DNA from: Marsupella aquatica
Lineage: Eukaryota > Plantae > Marchantiophyta
Assembly: GCA_973895155.1 (NCBI GenBank)
Contig: OZ316897.1
Location: 1,824,515 to 1,888,514 of the forward strand
Direction: 5' to 3'
Length of the DNA stretch: 64,000 nucleotides
Below are positions 3,334-21,102 of the stretch, piece by piece (position 1 is the first letter of the stretch; each line of letters starts with the position of its first letter). Under the pieces are notes generated by a model that saw nothing but the letters and a program-made list of their open reading frames with translations, made no database searches and had not been told where the DNA came from. The translations under genes were made by a program, and so were the position numbers.

Positions 3334-3488
3334 TGGCAAACTCAGGTAAGCTGAGAGTCATTAACAAAACCCCACTACCTAAAAAGAGCGAAGTAAAAAG
3401 ACCGGGCATCGGATATCAACTTTTAGAGTATCTCCTCCATTAATGGGGTTCAGGGGTTCACTCAATGTATATGTTTATGGTCCTGACA

Positions 3489-3577
3489 TGCTCCTTAATG
3501 GGGCATATGGGGCGACCCTATGCCGACCCGCGGGAGCGGGGAGGCGTACGGGAGCCCCATTGCCCCATTAAGGAGCA
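3489..3577. repeat. Subterminal hairpin with a ~24-bp stem just inside the left end of the element
   Basis: TGCTCCTTAATGGGGCA(T)ATGGGGC at 3489-3513 pairs with GCCCCATTGCCCCATTAAGGAGCA at 3554-3577. Confidence 0.85.
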
Positions 3578-4476
3578 ATGAAGGACCCTAAATATTTGTT
3601 AAACGATCGTACCCTAGATAAACGGTTGCCATTTGTCGATCTGGTGCAATCGCGCGCTACTTCTGTCACCCGCTGCTGGAGAGGCACCATGTCTCAAGCA
3701 ATCCCTGCCTTTCATTCAAACGTCAACGTCCCGGATGATCTCATAACCAATTCAGGTTGATCCAATGGTGCAGATTGGTAGGGTTACTGGCTGGACGTGA
3801 CACTATTGTAGGTTACTTAGTCTGCGCGAGTGACGCACTGAAGCAATTTTGCACTCCCCATTTCTGTGACGCCGTGAGGCTGCACTGTTTGAGATCGGGT
3901 GCTGAGAGATTTTTCTATGAACCAGCTTTGTAGATTTGTCGAGCTTTGTCTACGATATACTATTAGGGTAGTAAAGTATATCGTACTATCTAGGGTATAG
4001 AGGTTTTGTATGTGTGCTATATGAGCACTTTGTGTTTAGTTTGAGTTGGTGTGAGGGATAGTTATCCCCTTGTGTTGGCTCAAAGGCCTCATCTTTCAAT
4101 GTTGAGCCTTTGAGCATGAGCTTGGTGGCTATGGTGTGGCTGACCAGGTTGTGTGCAAGTAACGTGGATTCCTTGAAGCACAAGGTGCGTTGGGCTTGAC
4201 ATATATGTGTGATCGTGTCGGACGGGATCGTTGTTGGATTAGCACTGATCGTTGTTCGATTTCATCCAGAAAAGATTACATTGAAAGATCACTGCAGGTT
4301 GATTCGAAGCTGTTTCGAAGCTTGCTGTATTGCAGAGTTGATCCATGATCCATGGTCACGATGGAGTCCGCGTTGCGACGAGGTGCGGCGGCGACCTAGG
4401 GCACAAGGAAAACGACAATATTGTTGAACAGTGTTTTGGTCCGAGAATTGCGGCGTGTTTTGTGGCGCGCCTTGTT

Positions 4477-4919
4477 TTGGACTGGGATCATCCGAGTCCA
4501 ATTGTGGGTTGTCTCTTGAGATTTCATTTTGACTCAAAGTTGGATTTGGATTGGGATCATCTGAGTCCAATTGTGGGTTGTCTCTTGAGACCGCATTTTG
4601 ACTCGAAGTTGGATTTGGACTAGGATCATCCCAATCCAACTATACATTGGTAACTTCGGACCCCATTTGGACTTGAAGTTGAAGTTGGACTGGGATCATC
4701 CCAATCCAACTGTACATTGACAACGTTGGAGACTTGATTTTGGGCGAAGGTGAAATTGGATTAGGATCATCTCAATCCAACTGTATGTTGGCGTGTCCAG
4801 AGACCTCATCTGGACCTTGAAGTGGATTTGGATTAGGATCAACCCAATCCAACTGTATCTTGGCGACTTCACCTGTGTAGAGGATGTGAAGGACTTGGAC
4901 TGGGATCATCCCACTCCAA
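4477..4919. repeat. Array of 7 copies of a 25-bp palindrome (consensus TTGGAYTRGGATCATCCCAATCCAA) at 67-72-bp period
   Basis: Copies start at 4477, 4546, 4615, 4685, 4756, 4828 and 4895. Spacers are diverged but related to each other. Confidence 0.9.
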
Positions 4920-5443
4920 CTTGTGGACCGGGCGTCCGGATGACTATTGAATGGATTTGAATTGGAGGTTCACCCCGACGTAGCGAAGTGTGGCGGGTGT
5001 GAAGGGCTCCCTTAGGCTCATCTCGGCGTTTCAAGGCGACTCGTGACGAGGGGCGTGAGGACGGAACAGGAGCCAGACCGGAGCGGGCCGCAAGGTAGCT
5101 TGTTGGTACGTGAGGAGTAGTTGACAATTGGTTGGTTTGGAGTGCCTAAGTTGGTGCATAACTCCAAGGGGGGAGGTCACCCATCCCAAAGCTATTCCTC
5201 TTGCGCGTGCTTAACCATGGAGTTCTTATGGCATGTAGTGTACACACAAGTTTTCACAACTTGTTGTCTAAGTTAAAGGGCTAGGGGGCTTTATACACTT
5301 ATTAGTTTGTCTAGAGACCTGTTTTGGGCCAAATTAGATGCTACTTGGAGGTTTTTGATGCTTCTGAATCCATCTAGATGCATAGATTGGATTAATTTTG
5401 CATGGATTCTTAGCTACAACCTTGGGGCATTGTGAAGCCTATT

Positions 5444-8400
5444 ATGAAGGTGATGGTGATGATTTAGGGCAGATTTGTCATCACGGATTCTTCGGGTGCT
5501 ACGGAACTGTCCGAGGGACAAAGGACCGGTTTCACTCGAAGTGGGGTGCCGTTTCGGCCAACGACATTGATAGCAGTTCCAAGTGCAGCTTCAAATAGTG
5601 ATTCTGTTGAGGACTCTGTGACCATTTCTCCTTGTCATCGGGTGATTGCACCTTTGTTGTGGGATATGGAAGAGATGTACGGGGCTACAAAGGGTCCACG
5701 ACGATACTCTGGTGCAGTTGGCACGATTGATCTGGATGACTTCATCCAAGAGTTTGATACGTGATGCGACATGCAGTCATTGCGTAATGCCACGTTGTTT
5801 ACCCCTTTCATGGCATGGAAGGGATTATTTCAGCATTTGGAGGGGCCACCCATGGATGATTACCATGAGTTTCGGAAGGCTCATTTGGTTGAGATTGAGG
5901 CATGGAGGCAACATTGGTCACCTAATTATGTGTCCATCACCTATGGCACTAGAGCGACTGCCCAACCCATTGCTACAGTTGTTGCTTCTTCTAGTAGCAC
6001 TAGCCAGAGTGGCACACCATCTACCAGTACCACTCCAACAACATCCACCGCTACTCCTACCAGTATGATTGTGACAGGGGTTGGAGTCACGCCAACATTT
6101 AACCCTGTGGTGGAGTTCTTTGAAGTATTAAAGCAAAACTATCAGGGTGTGAGGACTGATAAGTTGAAGGGTCTCCAGGAGTTTCAGCGCAAGACTGGAG
6201 AGAGTCTACGTGAGGCATACACTCGTATGTGCAGATTGATCACTATCACCAAGGGAGTGACAGAGGCTCAAGCAGTCCAATTTTGGTATGCAATTCTGGA
6301 TAGAGAATTGCGACGTAGAGTGAGAGATGTCACTCTGCTTAGGGATGCAGATCCCACATTGGCAGTTGTTTTTACACTTTCTGAGCGAATTGAGCTCAAT
6401 ATGGTGAATGAGAAGGTGGTGACTTCCGGATTTGCCAAGGAAGCACCCAAGGCTGCATCTACATCGACACCACAGCCTGTTGCACGGAAGAGCCAGAGGG
6501 AGAAGCCTACTGCACGAGAGTCTACCAGTCAGAGACCTGTGCCTTCCTATGCTGGACAACAATCAGGATGTTGGACCTGTGGTGGGGATCATGCGCAGCG
6601 GTATTGCCCTGATCCTAGAGGGTCAGGAGGGGCCTCAGCACCTGATCAACGGCAGTGTGATCATTGTGGAGCTCCTGGACACACCAAGGATAGGTGTTTC
6701 TCACTCCATCCCGAGTTACGGAGAGGGGGACAACGCACACATGATCAGGGAAGAGGAGGTAGAGTTGGTGGTCGTGGCCGAGGTATGCCACATGTAGCAA
6801 GGCAGGGAGGTGAGGTTGCTCCTGCTGTGACCACAGATCCTAAGGATGCTAAGATTGCTCAATTGGAGCAACAACTAGCTGCTATGGCTAGTTCTCAGGT
6901 GAGACCTGCTTCTGGTGATGGGGCTTCTACATCCTATGGAGCTTCCACATCTTATGGGGTTGATGGAGATCTTGCCACCATGGGATTCATGTGTGGCACT
7001 GCACACATTGATGCATCAACAGCTTTGACGCGTGGGGCAGCAAAAGTTCTTGAGCCCCGAGGAGCAGTAGTGGACCTAGATCCACAGAGGGGGGATGCAC
7101 GTCGTCAGACAAAGCTTCCTCAGTCTTTTACATTGTCAGAGACAGTTCCGACTGCCTCTATGAACTCGATTCGGACAAACCCTAGCGTAGGTAAGTTGGC
7201 AGAATCAGGTAGTGATGCAGCAGGGATGACAGGTACCCTGCTGGGGGCGGCTACTACCATAGTGCGCACCCCATTATTTTCAGCTACAGACATGCTGAAC
7301 TTGGGAGTTGGTCCTGCAGAAGTGTTCAGATTGGCAGCTACACTCTGTGAGGACACTCCAGTTGTTGCTTCCCATGCAAAAGCAGCTTGCAGTGTTGAAG
7401 TTGAGAAGACCATGCCACCTACGGCTACTAGCGAGACCTGGCATGCAGCAGCAGCGAGGTTGGTGGATTTACCAGCACGCCCTGCATTTGAGAGGACTAG
7501 GTTTAAACCTAGTGTTGTGTCATTGGATAATCGGAGTGGTATCTTCCGATTAGTTGGGCCTACTGGAGCCATATACCAGCTAGAGAGAGTGTTACTGGAT
7601 ACTGGTGCTCAGCCCTTGATGTTGGGTAAGTCTGCGGTACGAGGATTGGCATTGCGTCCAGATGATCTGGAGGAGTGTCCCTTTCCTATTCAAACATCAT
7701 TGGGGGGACCTACACCCACACAACACATCACCAGACGACCACTTGAATTGAGGATTCAGGAGGGTCATGCCAAGGATAGCTCCCACATACAGGCGCGAGC
7801 TATTTTGACTAAGGCCGAGTCCTATGATGTGTTGGTGGGATGTACAGTGTTATACCCCATGGGATTTATTCTTGATTTTTGGGATGAATCAGTATCATAC
7901 AGACTTGATTGGCAGTCAGGAGATGCTCGATTGAGCAGGTTGCCAGTGCGATTTAGTGGACCTGTGGGAGGCCCTAAATCCACACTATTGTCTTTGGCAG
8001 CCTTCAGTGGTGTGATCACTGGTCCTGATGATTTGATGGAGGGTAATGCACATGCAACAGATGTTCCATCAGTGGAGGAGTCACATGAGGAGCAGATGGT
8101 GTGAAGGAGCAACCTGGATTGGGATGATCCCAATCCAACTAGTGTTGTGCCACCAGTATGGGGTACTGCACAAGCCTTGCCGCAAAGGGCAGCACAATTG
8201 GTACATGATGCATGGCGTCATGCTTTTACACCATAGTCAGGAGCAGAGCAATCTCCTACAAGTGGGCCAGTGACTCTTTCACCATTGGATACCACTCCTA
8301 TTGCATGGCAGTATCCACCAGAGGGTATTTGTTTGCTTGATCTATTTGGTGGAATTAGCACTGGATTGGCTGCTATTCTTCAGGCAGGAATTCCTGTGCG

Positions 8401-9103
8401 TCGATACTTGTATGTGGAGACAGATGAGACAACACGGAGAGTCTCATTGCGCCATTTGGCTATGTTGGTAGACCGTTATCCACAGTTGTTGCCAGTGGAT
8501 GCTGTTCGTGGCTATCAGCATGCATTGCCGGCTGATATTTCATTGCTGGGGGCGGATCATTTGGATCGCGTTGGCCCCATTGATTTGGTGATTGCTGGTT
8601 GGCCATGTCAAGGCCAATCAAGAGCTGGAGTTGGACATGGACTTCATGATCCACGCTCTGCATTGTTTTGGGAGATGTTACGGGTATTGCGTCATCTCCA
8701 ATTACACCAAACACATTTGCCTGCCTACATTTTGGAGAATGTGCCACTATTGGGTGATGAGCGTCATCGACTTGTTGCTAGTGTACATCAGGTCAGATCT
8801 TGGATTGGACCTGCTGTATTATTGGATGCTGCACGTGTGGGTTCTCGTGCACATCGTCCACGCTTGTGGTGGACTAATTTGTTACCTTGTGAAGTGTTGA
8901 AGCGAGCATTTGATAGCATTCCTCGCTCAGCATCCTTGGTGGTGGATGATATTTTGGATCCAGGGCGTTGTGCACAACATGTGACCCAGTCTGACAGATC
9001 TCCATTGGCAGTGGTCAATGTAGTTGGTCGTCCGCGTTGTGCATTACCCACTTTTGTGAGCCATTCTGCTTCATATACCATTCAAGATCGCTTTTACGGA
9101 TAA
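5444..9103 (+). pseudogene. Ty3/Gypsy-type Gag-protease-C5 DNA methyltransferase (DNMT3-like) polyprotein, interrupted by in-frame stops and 3' truncated
   Basis: ORFs 5546, 5771 and 8270 share one frame, with stops at ~5465, 5762, 8102 and ~8234. Gag core (LQEFQRKTGESLREAYTR), CCHC knuckles CWTCGGDHAQRYC and CDHCGAPGHTKDRC, protease LLDTGAQ. DNMT motifs LDLFGGI (I), IAGWPCQG (IV), ILENV (VI), RPRLWWTN (VIII); motifs IX-X absent. Confidence 0.88.
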
Positions 9104-9240
9104 GGCGATGCGTGATCAGCCTTAAGCAGCGGTGGAGTTTAGGGTCGAGTGGATTAGGTCACCCACGCTGTCCGGGTGACCGTGTTTTCTGGCAAGAGCA
9201 TGTTGGCTCTTTTGCAGTTAACCTTGCATGCTTATAAGTT

Positions 9241-9667
9241 CTACACTAAAATCAAAATGATAATTCTAGTAACAAGGGTAGTGGGTATTAAGAAAGGTTC
9301 AGGTGAAACTAAAATACTGTTAAACCCTATTTCACCATACTTGCGGACCAACACATCACGAAAATTAGTTTTCTTACGACATATGATCCTAATATCTCCA
9401 AGAGAAAATGAAACAGGAATATCATTCGGACTCCTATTCAGATCCATGACTTCAATAAAGGACAAAGATGATGCACTCCCACTCCTCTCGGTACGACACC
9501 ACTGGGTATATTATTGGCTCGTTAGAAACCATAACAGCAGTTGCAAACTGAGCTCCAAAATGATAGGTTAGATGTTGCCTCATAGATGGTTTGTCTAAAA
9601 GATGGACTCTAATCAAAAACGGATTACGAAGGGGAAGATCAGGGATAACTCTCTCTCCTGGATTCAT
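9241..9667 (-). CDS. Two tandem paralogous small ORFs of unknown function (9667-9452, 71 aa; 9447-9241, 68 aa)
   Basis: Mutual similarity IRV..DKPSMRQHLTYHFG.....VMVSNEPIIYP vs IRI..KKTNFRDVLVRKYG.....ILVSPEPFLIP; both end in a hydrophobic run. 4 nt separate the TGA from the next ATG. TATAAATA on the minus strand at ~9887-9894. Confidence 0.5.
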
Positions 9668-9987
9668 GATGGCTCTTCTATTCCTTTGCTATCCGGGCCA
9701 AAGGACGCCCCACCCCTATATTCCCAAAGAAACCTTATTCCCTAAGGTCCCATCTATAAATCTACCACTCATTCCTTTGCTATCCGGGCCAAAGGACGCC
9801 CCACTACTATGTTCAAGGCACAAAAGAGCTTCACAACCTTGAATGATAAACACTGCGGAATGAGGGGAGAGTGTCCCTCACCACTTTATTTATAGTGCAC
9901 ACCAAGAGGGCATGGATCAAGCCCAAGCACTTGAATGAAGGCCAAGTGTCAAACATCTAATACCTAAGAGTGTGCTAGTACTATTCA

Positions 9988-10175
9988 TAGTTGGTGAAAC
10001 TACTTTTAGTAAGTGGAACTACCATGCGTTGGTGGAACTACTATGCGTTGGTGGACCTACTGTGCGTTGGTAGAACTACTATGCGCTGGTGGACCTACTG
10101 TGCGTTGGTAGAACCACTATGCGTTGGTGAATATTATCGTAGTTGGTGGAACTACTCACATGCATTGGTGGAACT
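9988..10175. repeat. Tandem repeat of a ~20-bp unit (ACTATGCGTTGGTGGAACT-like)
   Basis: About 9 degenerate copies visible. Confidence 0.85.
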
Positions 10176-10842
10176 TCTATAGTCCGTTAATATAGCTAAA
10201 GAAGTTTAATAAAGTTTAAATTTAATAATCTAACTACTAAATTACTTATATAATCTATAGCATATTAAAACAAACAATTTTTTATAACTTAAGAGAAAAT
10301 TACGACAACGCCACATAACCAAGTCGGGCGGCACAATTTACGCAGCCTTGCGTTTAGGGTTTGCAGCTCGGCCTCCCACGTGTTGAGTCGGCCTTGCCTC
10401 GCCTTGGTGTGGGGGGGGGGTAAAGGAGGCAAGAGGTCCCACTTGGGCCTCATTCTTCTTCCCTCCTCCTCTTTTTCGCTCCTCCGCTCCTGCGCCTCCG
10501 CTCCTTCGCTCCTGCGCCTCCGCTCCTCCGCTCCTCCGCCTCATTCGCTTCCAGTCTCCTTAGGCCCCACTCCACCTCCGCCTTCACACTAGAGTTTCTG
10601 CCCTAGCCGCCACGTTAATTGCCCTAGATCTAACGCTCTGTGATCCTCCACGTGTCCATACGATCACGTGTCACAAGATGGATCCATCTAGACCTATTCA
10701 TGTGTCTTTGGTCGTTGAGCCAACAGAGGAGATAGACCTCTCCTCCATTGAGGATGTGGTAGACACGGCCCTCGAGGATTCCAGAGCCTTCCAATTGCTC
10801 AATCCAAGTAAGTATCTCGGTAACAAGTTGAATATTTGTGCA

Positions 10843-11387
10843 GTGGACAGAGATCATCCCTGTCCAAGTAGAGTCCAAGTAGAAGATAGTGATCTTTATT
10901 AGGAATTGGATAGAGATGATCTTTGTCCAAACTGAGGACAGAGATCATCCCTGTCCAATTGGATAGGGATCATCTATTTCCAAAATGACGATAGAGGATG
11001 TCCAACCAGAGGATCAAAACTGTTCTATCAGAGGATGCTGAGGATCTTTATTTGGAATTGGATAGAGATGATCCCTATCCAAGTAGAGGATAGAGATGAT
11101 CCCTGTCCAATTCCTAATAAAGATCGTCAGTATCCTCTGATCGAACAAAGATGATCTTTATTAGGAATTGGACAGAGATCATCTCTATCCAAGTAGAGGA
11201 TAGAGATCATCCCTATCCAAGTAGAGGATAGAGATGATCCCTGTCCAATTCCTAATAAAGATTGTCAAAATCCTTTGATCGAACAAAGATTATCTTTGTT
11301 ACAAATTGGACAGAGATCATCCCTATCCAAGTAGAGGATAGAGATCATCCCTGTCCGGCCAATTGGATAGGGATCATCTCTGTCCAA
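10843..11387. repeat. Intronic cluster of ~12 copies of the 25-bp palindrome (TTGGAYAGAGATSATCCCTRTCCAA)
   Basis: Copies at 10843, 10906, 10934, 10959, 11058, 11086, 11168, 11196, 11224, 11306, 11334 and 11363, all inside intron 10808-11464. Confidence 0.9.
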
Positions 11388-13069
11388 ACTGTGAGAGAAC
11401 CTCATCTTTGTCAATTACAAATTATGATTTTCCAAACTAATATGCATGGATGGGACTATTGCAGGGAGCGATCTAAATGGATTGAAACCAGCAATTTCAG
11501 AATCAGATTGCTCCGAGGGAGTCTTGTTGGAGCAGAGAAAACCAGATTTTCGTTGGGGCCTTGAGTTCTCTAGAGTTGATTTTGATTTCCTTAGCACGTC
11601 AGAGAGACGGGATCCCATTTTGTGCATAAAGGTCAGAACAGAAGATCAAGAGACTCTTGTACTCGGACCTGTAGTCTTCATTGGAATTGAAGGAAGAGGG
11701 TTTGTTTCCATCATTCTTGAGCTCCATGAAAGGATACGATGGGTTAAGCTACATCTACCATCAAAGGCGTATTCTTCAGAGTTCAATGTTGAGTGGTCTG
11801 CTGCTGGAGAACTTGGCGTGATGGCAATGGGCTTTTTCCCTAAGTCGTATTCAACTCAAAAGGTGATTGCTGGAGTGAAGGGGATTCTTCCACTTGACAT
11901 CATGTATGGGTTCCAATATGTGAAGCTGAATATCCATAAACACCAAGGGAATTATACATTTCCGGTGACATGGATTTTAAATAATTTGCTTGACAAGGCA
12001 GGATTCCTATCTTCGGAATCAGGTGTTTGCCTTGACAAGCAAATTGCATTTGCAGAGGAGTTTGCGATGGACAATGCAAAAAAGTGGGTAGAATCATTAC
12101 CCAAGCCTACAAATGTTGCACCAGTAGTGGTGAACGAGCTTCCAGTAGTTGTTAACAAAGAAGTTCCCAAACCTAGAAAAATATCTCAGGAGACAACAAC
12201 AGGGACTGCAGGAACAACGGCTGGGACAAGCACCAAACAAGTGGTAGGGAAGCGAAGACTAAGAGAGAGGAAGGGTCGCGAGAAAATTGAGACATTGCCG
12301 AAGGAACCCGAGAAGAAGCCAGTAGCGAAGAAACAGAAAACTGACAAGTCTCTTTTGCGGTCAACCCCTACGGACGTACAGATGCTCCCAGAAGATGAGG
12401 GAGACAAACTTGATGCCCCTGAGGAGAAGAAGGTCTTAGAAGGAAATGATGTTCTCCAGAGAATAGAGCAGTACTATACTTTTGGGATAAATGAACTGTT
12501 TTCTATTCCAGTGGAGAAAATTGTGCCTGCACCTGCAAGATTATGTTACAGGATGCTCAGTAGTACCCATGTGAAGCACATAGCCGAATCCATGGTCAAA
12601 AACCCCGGACATGAACCTCACGTCGCGGACCTGCTTCCTTATAGTATGAAGCTTAGAAAGTTGCTCCATTTTGACAGCACGGAGAACGACCGCAAAGACT
12701 TTCTTGTAGGAGTGAAGAAAGGCGAGATTGGTTTCTTTGCCATCAGTGGGCAACATTCGGCTAGGGCGGCCAAGTGGGTTCTCGAATGGGCCAAAACTGA
12801 TGCCAAGCTCACAGTGTTGGCAAAAAGTTAAAATACAGGAAGTCTAGATTATTGTCAGACCTTACACCATCGGCTATATTGGTTGAGCACTCAATGAGAT
12901 CAAATGCCATCAATTCGACGATGGTGTTTCAATCATGCTTCAAAGATACAATTGTTCATGCAAGGAAACAATTCCTTGAATGCGGAGGACCAAGAAAGCC
13001 AAAGCACGGGGACAACAAGTCAAACGCCCAAGAGAATCAAAAATTTCAGGTGAGAAACACTTTTCTTGT

Positions 13070-13484
13070 TTGGACAGAGATGGTCTCTGTCCAAGAGTGT
13101 GACCGTCCGTTACATTGATTTTAGTTCAATATATTTTTGGTTATGACTTGGATGGAGATGGTCTATGTCCAAGAGTGTGATCGTCCATTCTAGAGATTTC
13201 TCTTCCTTCTACTTTTGGTTATGACTTGGATGGAGATGGTCTCTGTCCAAGAGTGTGATCGTCCATTCTAGAGATTTCTCTTCCTTCTACTTTTGGTTAT
13301 GACTTGGATGGAGATGATCTCTGTCCAAGAGTGTCATCGTCCATTCCAGAGATTTCTCTTCCTTCTACTTTTGGTTATGACTTGGATGGAGATGATCTCT
13401 ATCCAAGAGTGTCATCGTCCATTCCAGAGATTTCTCTTCCTTTTACTTTTAGTTATGACTTGGATGGAGATGGTCTCTGTCCAA
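13070..13484. repeat. Intronic 78-bp tandem repeat, 6 units each carrying the 25-bp palindrome (TTGGATGGAGATGRTCTCTGTCCAA)
   Basis: Palindromes at 13070, 13148, 13226, 13304, 13382 and 13460, inside intron 13050-13556. Confidence 0.92.
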
Positions 13485-16179
13485 CAAGCAAGTGATAGTT
13501 TGTTGTCAAATCTCATTGATTGTAGATAACTTATTTTCCCCTAATTTTGACTGTAGGATTATTTGGCATTGGCAAGGATGACCATGGGGAGAAAAGACTT
13601 GAAAAATGTATATTGGTTGCTCTTTGCCGAGAATGATCTTTTCAAGCTCTGGCGATTAGTATGCCAGATGTGGATTGATGGACATCTTCCTGATGGAGCT
13701 GGTACACAGGGAAACAAAAGGTCCGAAAAGGGTATAACGGTCGCAATGTTTCGTTGTTTTGATGGTGAAATATCAAGTAGAGATTTGACCAGAATTTTGA
13801 ACAAGGTGAAGTCAGGTCAGGTTTTATTGAAGAAGGATCCGACAAATAAGTCAGATGTTCCAGCAATGGAGGACTTTGCAAAGGAGGTGAAGATATTGAT
13901 CAAACTGAAGTCTCTTATTGGAGATTACTACTTCAAGAAGGATCCAAAAAACTTCCCAGCAGATAGTGATTGGGTTAAAGTAATTGAGGTCCTCCCATTG
14001 TTAGGTGTCGAGTCGGAGTTGAACAGGTGCCGAAGAGCGGCTGGTGAAGTATGGTTGAAAAATTTATTGAAGTCTAATCATACAAAGGAGAGTGAGATAT
14101 TGCCAATGACATTGGTGATGCGTCTAGATGATATTACTGTCAAAAGTTTGGCGGGGGGACAAGTTCTTGGACCCAACCGTGGGTCACATTTTTTAGTAAC
14201 AACCTAATGAAGACAGTCGATCTAGAGTCGTTGGAAGAACAATCTCCAACATGCCCTCTTGCAATTGTTGATTTCAGCCGACTTCAACAGAAGGAGTGGA
14301 CCGAAGCAGAGATTTTGGTACTCTTCCAATACATAGTAGAGCTACCACGGAATCCCACCATTGTTGTGATGATAACTGTCCATCCGGGTTACCTTGTACT
14401 GAATGTCCTAAGCGCTCTTCGTAAATTAGGACATTCAAAAACTCTGACTATTCACATTGAGTATGGGAGTTATTACCGAGATGATCAACCTCACCCTCAC
14501 GACTCATGTTGGAAGGGAGGAATAGAAGAAGTTATCTTTGCGGGAATTTCTCGTGAAGAGAACGTCAGCTGGGATGAAGTGTTCAAGCCCAACCAGATGA
14601 AGCCAAAATGGGTGTACGGTGAAAAGGATACTGATTTCGTGGTTGAGAAGGTCAAGGGAAAGGGAAAGGCAAAGGGCGCGGACGAGGAGTCATTACATGA
14701 AGATCTAAGAAATATGATGACCCCAGAAGAGGCGGCAATACTTCTGCACATGGCACCTCGATTTGAGACGGTCGGCGCTCGGGGTGGGTGGGTGAATCCT
14801 CACGCCAAACCCACACGGATGATCCAAAAGATCATCCAAACACTGTCCGAGCCGGGGGATTTGATTCTTGACTTTTTCTCTGGCGGTCAAGTGATGAAGG
14901 CATCCCTTTTTTCTCAATGTGAATGTTTTGTTTATTGTGACTCTCAACATGAGAGACATTTTGTGGAAGCATATGCTTCGTTCCTTTGTGAGAAGGTTCC
15001 CACCATCAAAGATCGTTATGATCCCTATGTCGGTGGAAGTTCTAGACATTGGGAACCCTCTTCTGCCGTTGTTGCTATTGACGATGAATCAGATGGTGAT
15101 CAAGAAGATGGAGTTGACCAATCAGTCAAAGACGATGGGCCATCGGAGGAGGCATACGTGAAGAATTTGGATGACCGAGTTGGCGAGGGTGAAAATATTG
15201 ACCTTGTGGAAGACGATATGATTGTTGGATCTGCACCTTGCAGTTCACCAATTACAGATGTTGCCCCCATGGGACCCAACGAGGGCCAGTATGATGATAA
15301 CTTGGATAGAGATGGTCTCCATCCACAATTGCCTGGACAAGAGATGGAAGCTGATACATTTGAAAAACTGTCTTCAAACAACCTTCTCAATCAAGGTGCG
15401 GAGAGGCATGGTGAGTCCAATGAACTCGACACATTGGGATTGAGACCGCAGCCCATCCAAATAGTTGACATTCCTGTGAATGAAGCAAGTGCATCCACGA
15501 CTGCTGACAACCAGGCAGGTGCTTCAATTTGTCCCGATACACTCTTTTCCGCTTCTGATGACAAATTGGTGTTTGTTCGATCACAATCAAGAAGTCCCGT
15601 TATCCTTCCACTCTCAAAAAAGAAAGGGAAGAGAGTAGGATCAACTGGATATAAGTCACTTGAATATGATTGTCGATGTTACGTGTGGAAAAGTGGACCC
15701 GATGTAGGAACTGAAGTTGCGTTGGATGCTGCTCAATCAATTTTGAACAATGACTCGTACAAAAAGCACAAGAAAGATCCAACTTATAGAAGTGGAGAAT
15801 TGGGATTGATAACTCCGGTTTGGTCTGCACCTTATTGGATAGAGGAGAGTACCTCCGATGTCAATTATGAGATCCAACAAGAGCTCGGTGATGATATCTT
15901 GATTGATGAATATGGATCGCATTGTTAGCCAAGGTCTAGATGAGCGATGTGACCTTATCAATTTGATATAATATAGTCTGTATAATTATACTTCAAGTTT
16001 AACAATTAGAGCATCAGTATCAATATCCATCTCCTCTTTACGGTTTCTCAATGAATACGATCAGTATGCAGATATATTTTCTTTGTGGTTGGCCACTTGT
16101 GTTCGGTTGACAGAGATGATCTCTATCCAAACTTCAAATGTGGTTTTTTCTCTAAGATTGGTATTTGTTGCACTTGCAG

Positions 16180-17216
16180 AACCAAGACTTTGTTCCATCA
16201 AGCGCAAATTGCTGATTTTGGATCTTAACAAAATACTTTGGGATTCAGTTGAATTCCAAAGCAAGGGCAAATCCAGAAATGTTGTGACCCCAACTGGAGT
16301 GCATTGGGATAGAAAAAATGGAATTAGTCGCATGTACACAGAAAGGCCAGGGCTCCATGAGTTTCTAAAGTTGGTTTTTGACCGATTTGACGTTGCAATT
16401 TGGACATGTGCTGGGGTACATCGAACAGTGAAAATGCTGAACATGATGTTCACTGCTGAGGAGCGGTTGAAACTTAAGTTTGTATTCACACAGGTGGAAG
16501 CCTTTGACACAGGCATTCAAAGGCGTGACATTACAAACGGAAAGGCAAATGTGCTACTGAAGGATTTTCGGGTGGTATGGAGTGGATTTGGAAATCTATA
16601 TGATGAAACCAACACCCTCCTTGTGGATGACTCCCCCCTTAAGGCATTTGCCAACCCAAGCATGACCGGACTATTTCCAGTGCCCTACACGCATGCCAAT
16701 GGTGGAGATAATTTTCTTCTAACAATTCTTTGGCCTTGTCTTGAGAAACTATCCCATGCAAGTGACAATAGATGTTATCTTCTTCTTAACTCTCCACTGT
16801 GGTCTCTATTGCACATAAAGAGAGACAAGGTAAAAAATGAAATTACTTATGATCAACTTAGTAAGAGATGTGCAACAAAAATTTGGAAGTCACAGTTTAC
16901 GCATACTGTGTTGGACCTCAATAGCAATGAGATTCCTTGGAACATGAAGCATCGTATATGTAGTTTACGTCCTGAGGCAGAACTTGATGATGCACTTGTC
17001 ACGTCACTTGCTAAAGCATTTGTAGGAAGGGACTATTCAGGTCCACATAGAGAAAATCCCAGACACTTTTTGCGGGAGATTATAGCCATTAGGAACAACA
17101 CCACCAAGTTTCAGCTCCCTAAAGATAAAGGGACTTGCAACCGTGACACTAGGGTAGATAGTAAAGGAGACAGGGGCACGTGCTCAAATACACATTGTAA
17201 GGAGCACTTTGTTTAG
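16180..17216 (+). CDS. FCP1/NIF-family HAD phosphatase-like domain, probably a terminal exon
   Basis: KLLILDLNKIL (motif I-like), RPGLHEFL..VFDRFDVAIWT, LLKDF..VW, NTLLVDDSPLKAFANP. Acceptor CTTGCAG at 16173-16179; no convincing independent start codon. Confidence 0.8.
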
Positions 17217-17363
17217 AGATCTAACTCATGTTAAGCCCCTTAGATAGAAGAAAGACATTGTAAATTTGGAGATAATTGTATATTATTTTATAATCTATTT
17301 GGAGTTATGTCATTTTGTTCACACATATTCAAGGGTTTCTTTGTGCTGAAATGTTTTTATAAG

Positions 17364-17571
17364 TATGATCTCTATCCTACTATTCTTTGTGAATTAATAA
17401 ATAATGATCTCTATCCTATTATTCTTTGTGAATCAATAAATGATATAATATGTATTATTTATTAATATAATACTAATATGATTTGGCCTATAAAGTGTAC
17501 ATTTAGGGACCAAAAAGTGTACATTTGGGTTTCTTAAAGTGTACATTTGGGGACATGAAAGTGTACATTTC
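17364..17571. repeat. AT-rich short repeats: ATGATCTCTATCCTA..ATTCTTTGTGAAT x2 (palindrome half-sites) and AAAGTGTACATTT x4
   Basis: Visible directly in the sequence. Confidence 0.7.
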
Positions 17572-18587
17572 AAGACTGATTTGTGAACAAAAGAAAATAC
17601 ACTTTTAATGAATAGGCTGATAAGGGACTCTATTTCTCAAGGAGACGCGCTCCTAATTTTCTTTTGAACGCTTCGACTAAAACTGTGTTAGGTGTTGTAA
17701 ACTATGTAAGAGTCGGTGCGGCCTCCAAAGACTACAGTAGTTTCCGAGAATGACCTAGTCTAGCTAGAGCAGATGCATAGAGGCACTTTCTCCTGATCAG
17801 TTTCTAATAGCTAGATCATGCAATTGGCTGTTTGTGCATGTCATCACTCTCTGTCTGGGCGCTCATGTTTCATCCATTTTCTGCCAGTGTATCTCGGTGA
17901 GTAATTAAATGGACCTTGGCCTATCGAGATTTTTTGCCGTGTCTTGATGTGAATTGTTTGAAGTTGAATCTGAGCATGCATTTGTCGTCTGCTCTTGGGT
18001 TATGTTCACTGCCAACTGAAGGGCCCTGATTGTTGCTATGAATCAGGGGCATATGATAGCAAAGAAGTTGTGACTCGTGCATAGCTTGTACTAAGAATGT
18101 AATGCTGGAGGAAGAGGCTCTCCCTGCTGCATTATCTGATAATTTTATGCCTACTAACTTCCGCAAACCATTGCCTCGCATTTTATTTTCAGATTGCTGT
18201 ATAATGTTTGTGTGATAATGCACTTGGGCTACAGTGTACTAACTTCCGTTGCTATGCACTCTGCTCAAATTGACTTATGCATTGCTCTGATGTACATTTT
18301 GCCACTGTGGTTGTCGGTCAATCCTCTTTTTTCAGTCAAATCTAGACGATGAGGACGCTTCATCATGCCTCCGAAAATATCCCAAGGTTTTTTTGACTGG
18401 TTTCTTGCATTCGTTTTCACTGTATACTTTCTCAATGAAGTTGGGAGGCGTTCATGGTCCTTCAGCTCGATCTACATTGTTTAGGCTCACTCGACTTCAT
18501 TCAATGCTTCCCTTGAGCAACTGGATTTTATTGACTATAGAGCCAGATCGAGGCATTGTCGTAGCCAACTGATCGCCTGCTTATGAC

Positions 18588-20621
18588 ATGAATGATGAAG
18601 CAGACGTTGCTCGACAGATCGCGCCATCTTTCAGCTTGGGAATGTCTGCAATGACTTTGACAGACACAACCTCATCTGGAACAGTGCTTGAGCCATTGAC
18701 TGAGTGTTCATCTGGCGCTGAATCGTATACTAGTTTAGAATCAGATATACAGAACCTGAATGGAGACCCTGAATGGAGACCCAGATATTATTGCCCTTGA
18801 ATCGATGTCCTCAAAACTGCTAACAGTCAATCTTCCGAACGGTTCTTCATGTGAGTTTCTTCCTGAAGATCAACAGTTTCAGCGCACCCTTGCCGAGGGT
18901 GGCAGTAATCCAAGTGCTGCGGTTGATCAACGGGCAGCGAATCGCCTTAACAAGTTTTGTGAGTTCAAGGGGTTCGACATTGCCATTCTGTTCAAGGAAA
19001 TACCTGGTCAAGATTGTGTAATGCTGCTCACCAAGTTTTTTGAGCAAGTTTGCAAGAAAGATGGTGACCTCTATCCCTCTTAGACCCTGATGGGACTGTA
19101 CCGCGCCTTCCATCGCATTCTCAGGAAGAAACAAGAGAGATGCGCAATCGAAACAGGTAAGGAAGAGCCAGTGTTTGACATGAGATCTTCCCCTCTTCAA
19201 ACCAGTGGCTATTGCATGTGTTTTGGCTATGGAGCGGTCGAAGAAGGCAGGTGCAAACCTGCCAAGAAAGAAGGCCTCGGTAATCACCTTTGCTGATGAA
19301 GCTACTATTCTGGCTCATTCGAGCACTTTTGTCACGCATTCCAGAGGCCTACAGCGGAGGGCAATCTTCTTTTTACTAAACCGATTCTGTATCCGTGGCG
19401 GGAAAGAACTCAACAATCTCAAGAAGTGTGATTTCATGTTTGGAGATGATGTGCATGGTAGTTTTGTTAAATATGACAAGAGGCTTAGCAAGAACTATCG
19501 AATAAGCATGTATCGTTACCAAGAAGAGCACTTTAGGCCTGCTGTGATCAACTATGACTTCGATGTGCTTGAAACACTTAGGATGTTGATTCATCATCTT
19601 CCAGTAAGTGCCGTATTTCTCTTTTACCAATGCATCGATCATCCAAGAACTCATGCTTGGTATTCAACTTCTAGACTTGGTGAGAAAACGTTGGGCTCTT
19701 GTCTTAGGATTTTACACCAAGAGGCAAGACTAGGCACAGTTGGTGTATCCAACTAGACAGGGCGCACAACTTGCATCTCGCGGATGGGTGCTGAGAGTGT
19801 CCCTCCGAAAGTCGGGTTGAAGATTTCTGGTCACAAGAGCGAGGGTGCATATGAACGATATGATTGTAGTTCTGAGGATCAAGTGCGAGCCGCATTGAGA
19901 TGTGCCACTGATGGCACTCCTTACTCTTCGACAGTGAGTATGGAGACAGCAAAGGGGACGCGGGTGCTCATTGATGGAGGTTCAGGTGAGGATGAGACTG
20001 TCCCGGTTGTTTCTGTTGATGGTGTTACAGGCCAGGTCGGGACTGTCCCTGCTATTCTTGTGGATGAAGGTCCACAACTGAAGAAAGCGGAGGATGGAGC
20101 ATCAGTAGAAGGTAATGAATTTCCTATTTTTGTGGAAGTTCTTGGGTTAGATTGTGGATCATGAGGATGATAAGTTTACTTTTGTGTTTTGTACGGTGTC
20201 CGAATGTGCAGATTCAAGTTTGCAGACTGGGCTGAACTCAGAAGTCCTAGTTGAGGCTGCTCACTGTGAAGCAGCTGTTACAGTTGTGATCTTTGAGCTC
20301 GAGCCGGAGGCTGTGGTGCCTTCCCTGATAGCACCAAGCTGTGATGAGCCAATCCACTTCAATCAACAGCCATAGTTTAATGCTTTTGACTGTTTTCTTG
20401 AGTCCATGGACTGGGACGTGTTGAGTGCTGAGCCAAGGTGGAGAGGGATTGCTCCCCATGGGGTGACTGTTGTTAACAGGGTTGTGCTGCATACTGTTTT
20501 TGATAAAATTAAAGCGCTAACCAATTGCACCATGAATGGTTGCACATTCAGCCTTAATTTTGGCCCACATGGAGGAGGACCTGGAGGAGGTGGAGATGGA
20601 GGAGGAGCGGCATTAATCTAG
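18588..20621 (+). pseudogene. Crypton-type (DUF3504/ZMYM-like) tyrosine recombinase, disrupted
   Basis: LTKFFEQVCKKDGDLYPS*TL binding-domain motif; catalytic R in FCIRGGKEL; SN*TGRTT (HxxR position); ISGHKS; catalytic Y in YERY; C-terminal NCTMNGCTFSLNF. Lesions: 13-bp duplication CCTGAATGGAGAC (~18755-18780), stops at 19081, 19754 and 20373, frameshifts at ~19190 and ~20155. Confidence 0.88.
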
Positions 20622-21102
20622 GCTTAGTTATTTAGTAGACTATAGAGAGTAGACTATGCTCAGATTATAGACACTAGACTGCTCAGTAGACTAAGCTCAG
20701 ATTATAGCAGCTAGTGAAAAGTAACTCGTATGGGTGTCCAGAAGGAGGTGTTACTATTCTTTAGCTTTATGAGCCATTGAACTGTAATTTTTGTTTACAC
20801 ATCAATAAAGTTCTTTCCCCCACCGTGGGATTTCATTATCAAAGTTCTTGCGTTTTTTAATCTTCCAGCTGTATCCACAAATTACCTGGTGTACAAATAC
20901 ACCTGAATTCCCTAACGGTATCCACATTTTACTTGGTGTACAAATACATCTCAAAATATGGTTTAAATTAATGAGATGTAAAGCTGACAACGTGGCAAGC
21001 TCTGATAAGGGAAGAGCAATAAAATCACCGAACGACCCTTAACGTATACATTAAATACCCTGTATTCTGACACTCTAACTTTAATATATTGGTCAACTTT
21101 TA

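Follow-up and report, generated by a model that had tools for sequence, protein, structure and literature searches.

The window analysed here is a stretch of 64,000 nucleotides from the liverwort Marsupella aquatica (contig OZ316897.1, positions 1,824,515 to 1,888,514). It contains a transposable element, for which the interval 3472-21043 (17.6 kb) was taken as given in all counts. Part of this element is a cassette formed by a gene with a ParB/Srx-like and a methylase-like part and by a neighbouring NIF (CTD-phosphatase-like) gene, and in and around this cassette a 25-bp palindrome is found 28 times. These sites are not random, they are confined to the cassette-bearing elements in the window and in the 21-24-kb loci scanned, they occupy matching positions in the cassettes of related lineages, and they are independent of the recombinase of the element. 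We propose, with a probability of roughly 0.6 as judged from sequence comparisons, that the palindromes are docking sites for a protein of this portable cassette.

Palindromic sites of the window

A preliminary description of this DNA had reported some 28 copies of the palindrome, with the consensus TTGGAY-NNR-GAT-S-ATC-YNN-RTCCAA. Scanning the window with this consensus retrieved 27 sites with at most 3 mismatches, all within 4477-16130 and at the places described, and a weaker 28th copy at 11334, with 4 mismatches. By chance, 0.06 sites are expected (mean of 100 dinucleotide shuffles, maximum 2). Three arrays and three single sites make up this total (Table 1), 11 of the 12 palindromes in array 2 being at 3 mismatches or less. 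The ~46 kb of host DNA of the window are devoid of copies, as had been stated, and the 12-bp half-site TTGGAYNNRGAT has 40 of its 41 occurrences inside the element. Two more solo half-sites (ATGATCTCTATCC) belong to a 39-bp tandem repeat located 3' of the NIF-like gene. The two introns of the ParB/methylase-like gene hold 18 of the 28 sites, and all others are found at 6.5 kb or less from this gene.

Units of a same array are closely alike (comparison scores of 41-49), whereas spacers taken from different arrays score 6-8, for a null median of 7. Since the latter do not exceed the similarity of shuffled sequence, the palindrome alone is common to the three arrays, in agreement with the earlier remark that the surrounding repeat units are unrelated. 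The long spacers of the intron-1 array (11111-11167 and 11249-11305) are themselves flanked by a 14-bp inverted repeat, TTCCTAATAAAGAT / ATCTTTATTAGGAA, decayed in the second spacer, and also hold AAAGAT-G-ATCTTT, which has the GAT-S-ATC centre with other arms.

Two of the single sites had been placed in coding sequence. This is correct for the site at 15302, which is inside the open reading frame (ORF) 14207-15928. The site at 8114, thought to be in a coding linker between protease and DNA methyltransferase (DNMT), falls in fact in a 165-bp gap between two ORFs, and is not shown to be coding. The six sites assigned to intron 2 are indeed intronic, but the bounds of this intron had to be corrected to 13051-13556, the ORF stop at 12831 being a frame break of the window copy and not an exon end.

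Table 1. Position and main characteristics of the element features in the window, and palindromes or NIF-like genes of related loci (locus positions are those of the locus).
Feature	Position	Strand	Characteristics
Array 1	4477..4919	.	7 palindromes, type TTGGAYTGGGAT-C-ATCCCARTCCAA, period ~70 bp; upstream of Gag-protease/DNMT ORFs
Single palindrome, array-1 type	8114..8138	.	gap between ORF 5771-8104 and C5-methylase ORF 8270-9103
ParB/Srx-like + amino-methylase-like gene	10679..15928	+	exon 1 10679-10808, exon 2 11465-13050, exon 3 13557-15928
Array 2, intron 1	10843..11387	.	12 palindromes, type TTGGAYAGRGAT-S-ATCYCTRTCCAA, periods 28, 110 and 138 bp
Array 3, intron 2	13070..13484	.	6 palindromes, period 78 bp
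Single palindrome	15302..15326	.	acidic linker of methylase-like exon
Single palindrome	16106..16130	.	spacer between methylase-like and NIF-like genes
NIF (CTD-phosphatase-like) gene	16212..17216	+	conserved neighbour of ParB/methylase-like gene
39-bp tandem repeat	17365..17459	.	solo half-sites (ATGATCTCTATCC); after NIF-like gene
NIF-like gene with LDLNK(I/V)L	window 16212-17216; L001 3267; L003 3149; L004 4431; L005 14477; L006 15665		
Palindrome, Calypogeia fissa L005			GCCTCRAGAY-N-RTCTYGAGGC, often extended to 27 bp; 25 copies, chance 0.00
Palindrome, C. fissa L006			GCCTCRAGAY-N-RTCTYGAGGC, as L005; 21 copies, chance 0.00
Long tandem inverted repeat, L002 (metagenome contig, 30% identity)	matching intron		several
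33-bp tandem repeat, L002	3' end		with GCCTCGA...TCGAGGC; 25-bp palindromes upstream; several
25-bp palindrome, L002 type, L010	start of matching intron		1 copy
20-bp palindrome, L007, distant relative	GCA_046195345.1, CM100796.1, 970-14368		CTTCGGGAYGCRTCCCGAAG type, also in introns of the gene; 39 copies
29-bp repeats, L004	before NIF		AGCTACWGTGCACWGTAGCT, few; weaker case

Variation among the copies gives some indication of how the palindrome might be read. Compensating changes between the two arms had been proposed, and such a two-sided switch does exist at pair 7/19, which is T:A in array 1 and at 8114 and A:T in all other copies. It exists at this pair alone: at pairs 6/20 (CG 4, CA 5, TG 10, TA 7) and 9/17 (GC 6, GT 4, AC 8, AT 10), each arm varies irrespective of the other. 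The seven independent sites are all homotypic at pair 7/19, which is only mildly improbable, and because homotypic sites could also result from descent, covariation within the window is not relied upon here. The two half-site types suggest, at the level of sequence comparison, a slightly different history for the Gag-protease/DNMT module than for the ParB/NIF module.

A function of the palindromes as hairpins of the pre-mRNA or of single-stranded DNA, with a role in splicing control or as a source of small RNA, would agree with the intronic location of two arrays and with the 12-bp stems that could form. Yet sites are also present in intergenic spacers and upstream of genes, 13 of the 28 copies have A:C or C:A mismatches, and G:T mismatches are not in excess on either strand (25, versus 18 A:C, on the + strand, hence no strand bias), pairs 6/20 and 9/17 being devoid of covariation. 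Given this independent variation and the balanced mismatches, two half-sites read separately on duplex DNA give a better fit, and we regard hairpins as very improbable.

Palindromes and cassette in related loci

All ORF pieces of the element were used as tblastn queries. The ParB-like exon, the methylase-like exon and the NIF-like gene were found to recur together in public loci, from Calypogeia fissa and three other public lineages. The NIF-like gene follows the two exons in L001 and L003-L006, the same order is deduced from gene calls in L008, and L002 ends before the NIF position. For the Gag-protease, DNMT and recombinase pieces, no tblastn match was obtained in the related loci, C. fissa loci L005 and L006 being tested with 10-kb flanks. 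The C. fissa loci have instead, upstream, a DUF7869 ORF (E 1.4e-32) and a weak EnSpm-type match. The cassette is therefore placed on different transposon backbones, with Gag-protease/DNMT and Crypton-like recombinase ORFs in the window versus a DUF7869 ORF in C. fissa.

Related cassettes contain palindromes of their own (Table 1), which surfaced only through a general palindrome scan: the exact window motif has zero copies in the first four loci searched, and the C. fissa motif has zero copies in the window. Several runs of the L007 palindromes are spaced by 27-28 bp, and the intron-1 array of the window likewise by 28 bp; in C. fissa the spacing is ~35 bp. Proteins of the palindrome-bearing lineages are 30-50% identical.

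At this level of divergence, the compartments occupied by the palindromes are the same. In the window, L005 and L006, sites are found in the upstream spacer or intron 1 and in intron 2, none is in the ParB-like exon or in the NIF coding region, and exactly one is in the methylase-like exon. This exonic site belongs each time to the same acidic low-complexity linker (15302 in the window, 12532 in L005, 13436 in L006), some 45-70 residues ahead of a conserved GAS...SSDKLV block. The spacer before NIF holds 1 site in the window and 10 in each of L005 and L006, and a few more are found after NIF. Occurrence outside cassette elements was checked in the window and in the 21-24-kb loci, and no palindrome was detected outside the cassette in L005 and L006. 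An independent micro-MITE (miniature inverted-repeat transposable element) was also considered as the source of the motif; its absence from the host DNA of the window and from the surroundings of the L005 and L006 cassettes rules against it, and so does the presence of one site at a similar place of the same coding linker in two lineages.

The motifs themselves are partly related. The inner core GAGAY-N-RTCTC and its 1-bp centre are common to arrays 2 and 3 of the window and to the C. fissa palindromes; the outer arms of the two are unrelated. By our own estimate, five shared inner positions would be reached by chance about once per 500-1000 comparisons. In L006, an inverted pair of 23-bp palindrome-like sites (CGGGTAGAGATGGTCTCGACCCG type, with the GAGAY core; 6-28 and 7060-7082) was also noticed, bracketing an apparently inverted-duplicated transposase region of C. 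fissa.

One could imagine that the arrays are neutral or selfish palindromic minisatellites, generated by slippage or from hairpins and persisting in the non-coding DNA of the cassette with no protein partner. The variable unit number of the tandem arrays from copy to copy, the many imperfect palindromes and the further inverted repeats nested in the arrays all fit this idea. We nevertheless consider it unlikely, as it is difficult to reconcile with a palindrome that is the sole common part of arrays having unrelated spacers, with the use of the same compartments in lineages with 30-50% protein identity, with a coding-DNA site kept at a similar place of the same linker, and with the inner core common to the window and C. 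fissa.

The sites could also be bound by a dimeric transcription factor of the host, as promoter or enhancer modules multiplied by the element, and their location upstream of genes and in first introns, which are common places for enhancers, would presumably suit such a factor. One kept motif would then be expected, but outer arms change completely between related liverwort cassettes. For this reason a host factor seems to us quite unlikely, and the lack of copies in the host DNA of the window also argues against it.

Another possibility is that the sites serve the mobility enzyme of the element, the tyrosine recombinase here and a transposase elsewhere. DNA transposons often have subterminal transposase-binding repeats, such as the TnpA motifs of En/Spm, and tyrosine recombinases use inverted-repeat sites. 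In the window, however, zero sites are found in 17460-21043, which includes the recombinase ORFs and the 3' end, or less than 1 kb from the 5' end (3472); the 12-1-12 palindrome leaves no 6-8-bp crossover spacer; and C. fissa cassettes have palindromes with the same core but no recombinase match within 10 kb, a DUF7869 ORF being nearby instead. Taken together, these observations make the recombinase an improbable binder, and we give little credit to mobility sites in general.

The cassette genes and the predicted reader of the palindromes

In the model of the ParB/methylase-like gene (Table 1), intron 1 (10809-11464) holds array 2 and intron 2 (13051-13556) holds array 3. Both introns were deduced from reading frames, GT/AG ends, homologues and the NCBI model P0010; the proposed boundaries had no matching joint in public contig sets, none of which is on record as RNA. 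P0010, from C. fissa, joins the ParB-like and methylase-like exons, and a distant relative, P0076, carries both parts within one 820-residue protein, hence our conclusion that the two parts form one gene. The window copy is broken, by a frame shift near 12826 and another near 14190. At the first of these, the L002 homologue reads through, and a one-base indel at 12821 distinguishes most other copies in public runs from that of the window. Public contigs covering 10600-16200 (four runs, four organisms) include 1297 pieces in one run and 3065 in another, which indicates a multi-copy family in at least two organisms, and the unit number of the intron-1 array differs between copies.

Protein searches were made separately on exons and frame pieces. 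Among the neighbouring ORFs, Pfam recognises a C5 DNA-methylase in ORF 8270-9103 and a NIF phosphatase in ORF 16083-17216. For the ORF pieces 18588-20621, the presumed Crypton-type tyrosine recombinase, Pfam gives no integrase match and a faint DUF3504 match (E 0.11). Pfam detected no family in the cassette proteins beyond weak methylase and NIF matches.

The methylase-like part matches M.RsrI across motifs X-I (E 2e-5), and the Pfam N6_N4_Mtase profile scores 25.2 bits on ORF 14207-15928, below its 26.7-bit cut-off. The catalytic motif (D/N/S)PP(Y/F/W) is present neither in the window protein (13557-15925) nor in P0001-P0004 and P0076. Only motifs X-I (…KP…VLDFFSGGQ) resemble those of a real beta-class amino-methylase.

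In view of the GATC at the centre of the window motif and of these M.RsrI and Pfam resemblances, the palindromes might be methylation targets (GATC or similar) of an amino-methyltransferase of the element, and constitute a self-marking epigenetic tag; the presence of GATC in the motif had been pointed out in the preliminary description. The GATC is not conserved, however: relatives often have GAGACCGTCTC at the core. With this change and with the catalytic motif missing, GATC methylation is unlikely to be what the sites are conserved for, and we find such a tag hardly credible.

The NIF-like protein has also diverged at its catalytic motif, which in the NIF phosphatase family is normally DxDx(T/V). 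It reads LDLNK(I/V)L, with Asn in place of the second Asp, in all six close relatives, and the more distant L008, with IIDLNGVL, also keeps Asp-x-Asn. This suggests a conserved pseudo-phosphatase. As both the methylase-like and the phosphatase-like domains are without catalytic motifs, catalysis is unlikely, and their sequences suggest that they are predicted binding modules rather than catalysts.

The ParB-like part is characterised by an invariant box, A-I-S-G-Q-H-S, with no arginine; we take this SGQHS box to recall the DGQHR box of the DndB branch, in the ParB/Srx fold. One member has a weak DndB match in Pfam (E 0.031). The nearest language-model neighbours are DUF3723 (0.95), ParB_N (0.91) and DUF6551 (0.89); no Pfam match to DUF3723 was obtained for any member at E up to 10, and neither Pfam nor PDB sequence searches, with single sequence or profile, gave a ParB match for this exon at E up to 10. 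Long distant relatives contain no informative domains. Two AlphaFold runs on the ParB-like exon had a mean confidence (predicted local distance difference test, pLDDT) of 57.7 and 47.6, too poor to judge the fold, and Foldseek and VIA-align returned for these low-pLDDT models Myb-like helices (Z up to 4.6), a weak and non-specific resemblance. The first ~200 residues of exon 2 (11465-12100) are conserved in relatives and predicted with moderate confidence, with a weak PH/PTB or SANTA-like resemblance (Z ~5). The family is rare, with 143 representatives at E ≤0.001 among 1.84 billion proteins.

The preliminary description had interpreted the palindromes as selected binding sites of an element-encoded protein. 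This agrees with sites that are non-random, confined to the element, independent of their flanks and that follow the ParB-like/methylase-like gene; a strict parS nature is not supported (see below). The ParB-like protein, the recombinase and the methyltransferase had been listed as alternative binders. This list has to be revised, the first and the last being one gene and the recombinase not accompanying the palindromes.

As its gene and the NIF-like neighbour constantly accompany the palindromes, the ParB-like/methylase-like product is the best candidate binder. We infer that it would read the sites as a dimer, possibly together with the NIF-phosphatase-like neighbour. Within each half-site, the inner part at the dyad (GAGAY) would be kept between lineages and the outer part, here TTGGAY, would be private to a lineage. 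Amplified in tandem within the cassette introns and spacers, such sites may allow the protein to recognise copies of its own element family. As for the effect of binding, we infer that the element genes would most likely be kept transcribed, or their chromatin state otherwise set, as VANC does for VANDAL elements.

Several observations weigh against docking sites for a cassette protein. L008 carries the cassette, yet has no repeated palindrome in its 6.8 kb. The ParB-like label is derived from the DndB match at E 0.031, the language-model neighbours and the SGQHS box. Arm covariation, i.e. the switch at pair 7/19, amounts to about one event. Finally, units of an array are copies of one another, which brings the independent sites of the window down to about seven; even so, a 25-bp pattern would not be expected to occur nearly as often by chance.

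If the palindromes are bound by a protein of the cassette, transposons would carry and exchange a sequence-specific 'self-address' system. It would be comparable to the Arabidopsis VANC system but made of prokaryote-type domains, and might occur widely among algae and early land plants. Lineages that each have their own palindrome and a homologous protein would offer a natural series for learning how the protein reads DNA, with the conserved loss of catalytic motifs suggesting that the domains act as binding modules. Such protein-site pairs could become orthogonal DNA-targeting tools, and the arrays a simple annotation marker of cassette-bearing elements.

A much broader scheme can be drawn, which we put forward tentatively and judge rather doubtful in its full extent. 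Liverworts, and probably other plants and algae, would share a portable self-recognition module consisting of a DNA reader (ParB/Srx-like plus pseudo-methylase), a NIF-like pseudo-CTD-phosphatase having DxN instead of DxD, and arrays of a palindromic 'address' that evolves fast around a conserved GAGAY core. Unrelated transposon superfamilies (tyrosine-recombinase, EnSpm/DUF7869-type, Mutator-like and Sola-like) would exchange this module, which would specifically bring RNA polymerase II, or else an anti-silencing activity, to copies of its own family.

Known systems and neighbouring features

The element is a land-plant member of a design that earlier authors suggested for transposons of algae. 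In the red alga Bostrychia, Plavaka elements have accessory genes, among which PAG3 (ParB-like and 2-oxoglutarate oxygenase) and PAG2 (N6-adenine methylase and SET), that move between transposon families (10.1101/2025.02.11.637652). In Ectocarpus, Sola1-1_Ec32 encodes a 1104-residue protein with ParB-like and DNA-methylase parts, and PubMed id 21507349 is cited for similar proteins in algal transposons (PMC12477816). Both papers hypothesise that the accessory protein binds its own element (10.1101/2025.02.11.637652; PMC12477816). Going by their descriptions, the algal proteins resemble that of the cassette in being encoded by large transposons, by a gene joining a ParB-like and a DNA-modifying-type domain (PF01555 in Ectocarpus), and in moving between transposon superfamilies. 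The corresponding putative layout here, ParB-like then PF01555-type, is drawn from weak matches (M.RsrI E 2e-5; Pfam 25.2 bits, cut-off 26.7; DndB E 0.031; ParB_N 0.91). Tandem inverted-repeat arrays lie beside the gene in Bostrychia, as they do in the window, L002, L005, L006 and L007. In contrast to the algal cases, the host here is a liverwort, the backbone has a Crypton-like recombinase, and arrays are located in introns and spacers. Features added to the design are the conserved NIF-phosphatase-like partner, methylase-like and NIF-like domains that have lost their catalytic motifs in a conserved manner, half-sites whose inner part is conserved and whose outer arm is private to a lineage, and a site inside coding DNA.

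The VANC proteins of Arabidopsis VANDAL elements recognise short motifs amassed as tandem repeats in the non-coding regions of the element, which differ between related elements, and hypomethylation by VANC was shown experimentally (PMC5735166). The window family is alike in that its motifs are concentrated in non-coding parts, in tandem, and differ between related elements. The VANC motifs are short, however, and not long palindromes, and VANC belongs to another protein family, restricted to Mutator-like elements; for the present system, a comparable effect is a prediction.

With ParB-parS, the shared features are repeated palindromic sites clustered around a gene with a ParB/Srx-type box. 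Unlike in ParABS, no ParA-type ATPase was found by Pfam among the element ORFs scanned, and the conserved neighbour is the NIF-like gene. The SGQHS box is not the arginine-rich CTP (cytidine triphosphate) box, no helix-turn-helix is confirmed, and outer arms are lineage-specific, in a transposon of a eukaryotic nucleus. With, in addition, no ParB match in the sequence searches, the parS-like interpretation of the preliminary description is not supported in a strict parS/ParABS sense: a segregation role is implausible, and 'parS-like' holds as a loose analogy.

DUF3723 is a conserved accessory gene of fungal Starships, cargo elements with tyrosine recombinases, and is said to resemble DNA-binding segregation proteins (10.1101/2021.12.13.472469). 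Its clusters being the nearest named language-model neighbours of the ParB-like part, we see it as a lead, although one without Pfam match. Palindrome arrays have not, to our knowledge, been reported with DUF3723.

Some minor features were noted in or next to the element. A second repeat follows the NIF-like gene, at 17487-17570 of the window, in the form of 22-bp tandem units with TGTACATTTGG. It is shared with L004 (5782-5881; ~38% protein identity), and L005 and L006 have none. The small ORF 9158-9568, located after the DNMT ORF and before the ParB-like gene, finds in L004 (2063-2338), on the opposite strand, a match of 41% identity, and may be a further component of the cassette. Just upstream of the element, ORF 692-1459 encodes a reverse transcriptase (RVT_1, E 5.6e-18) and is part of a different retroelement.

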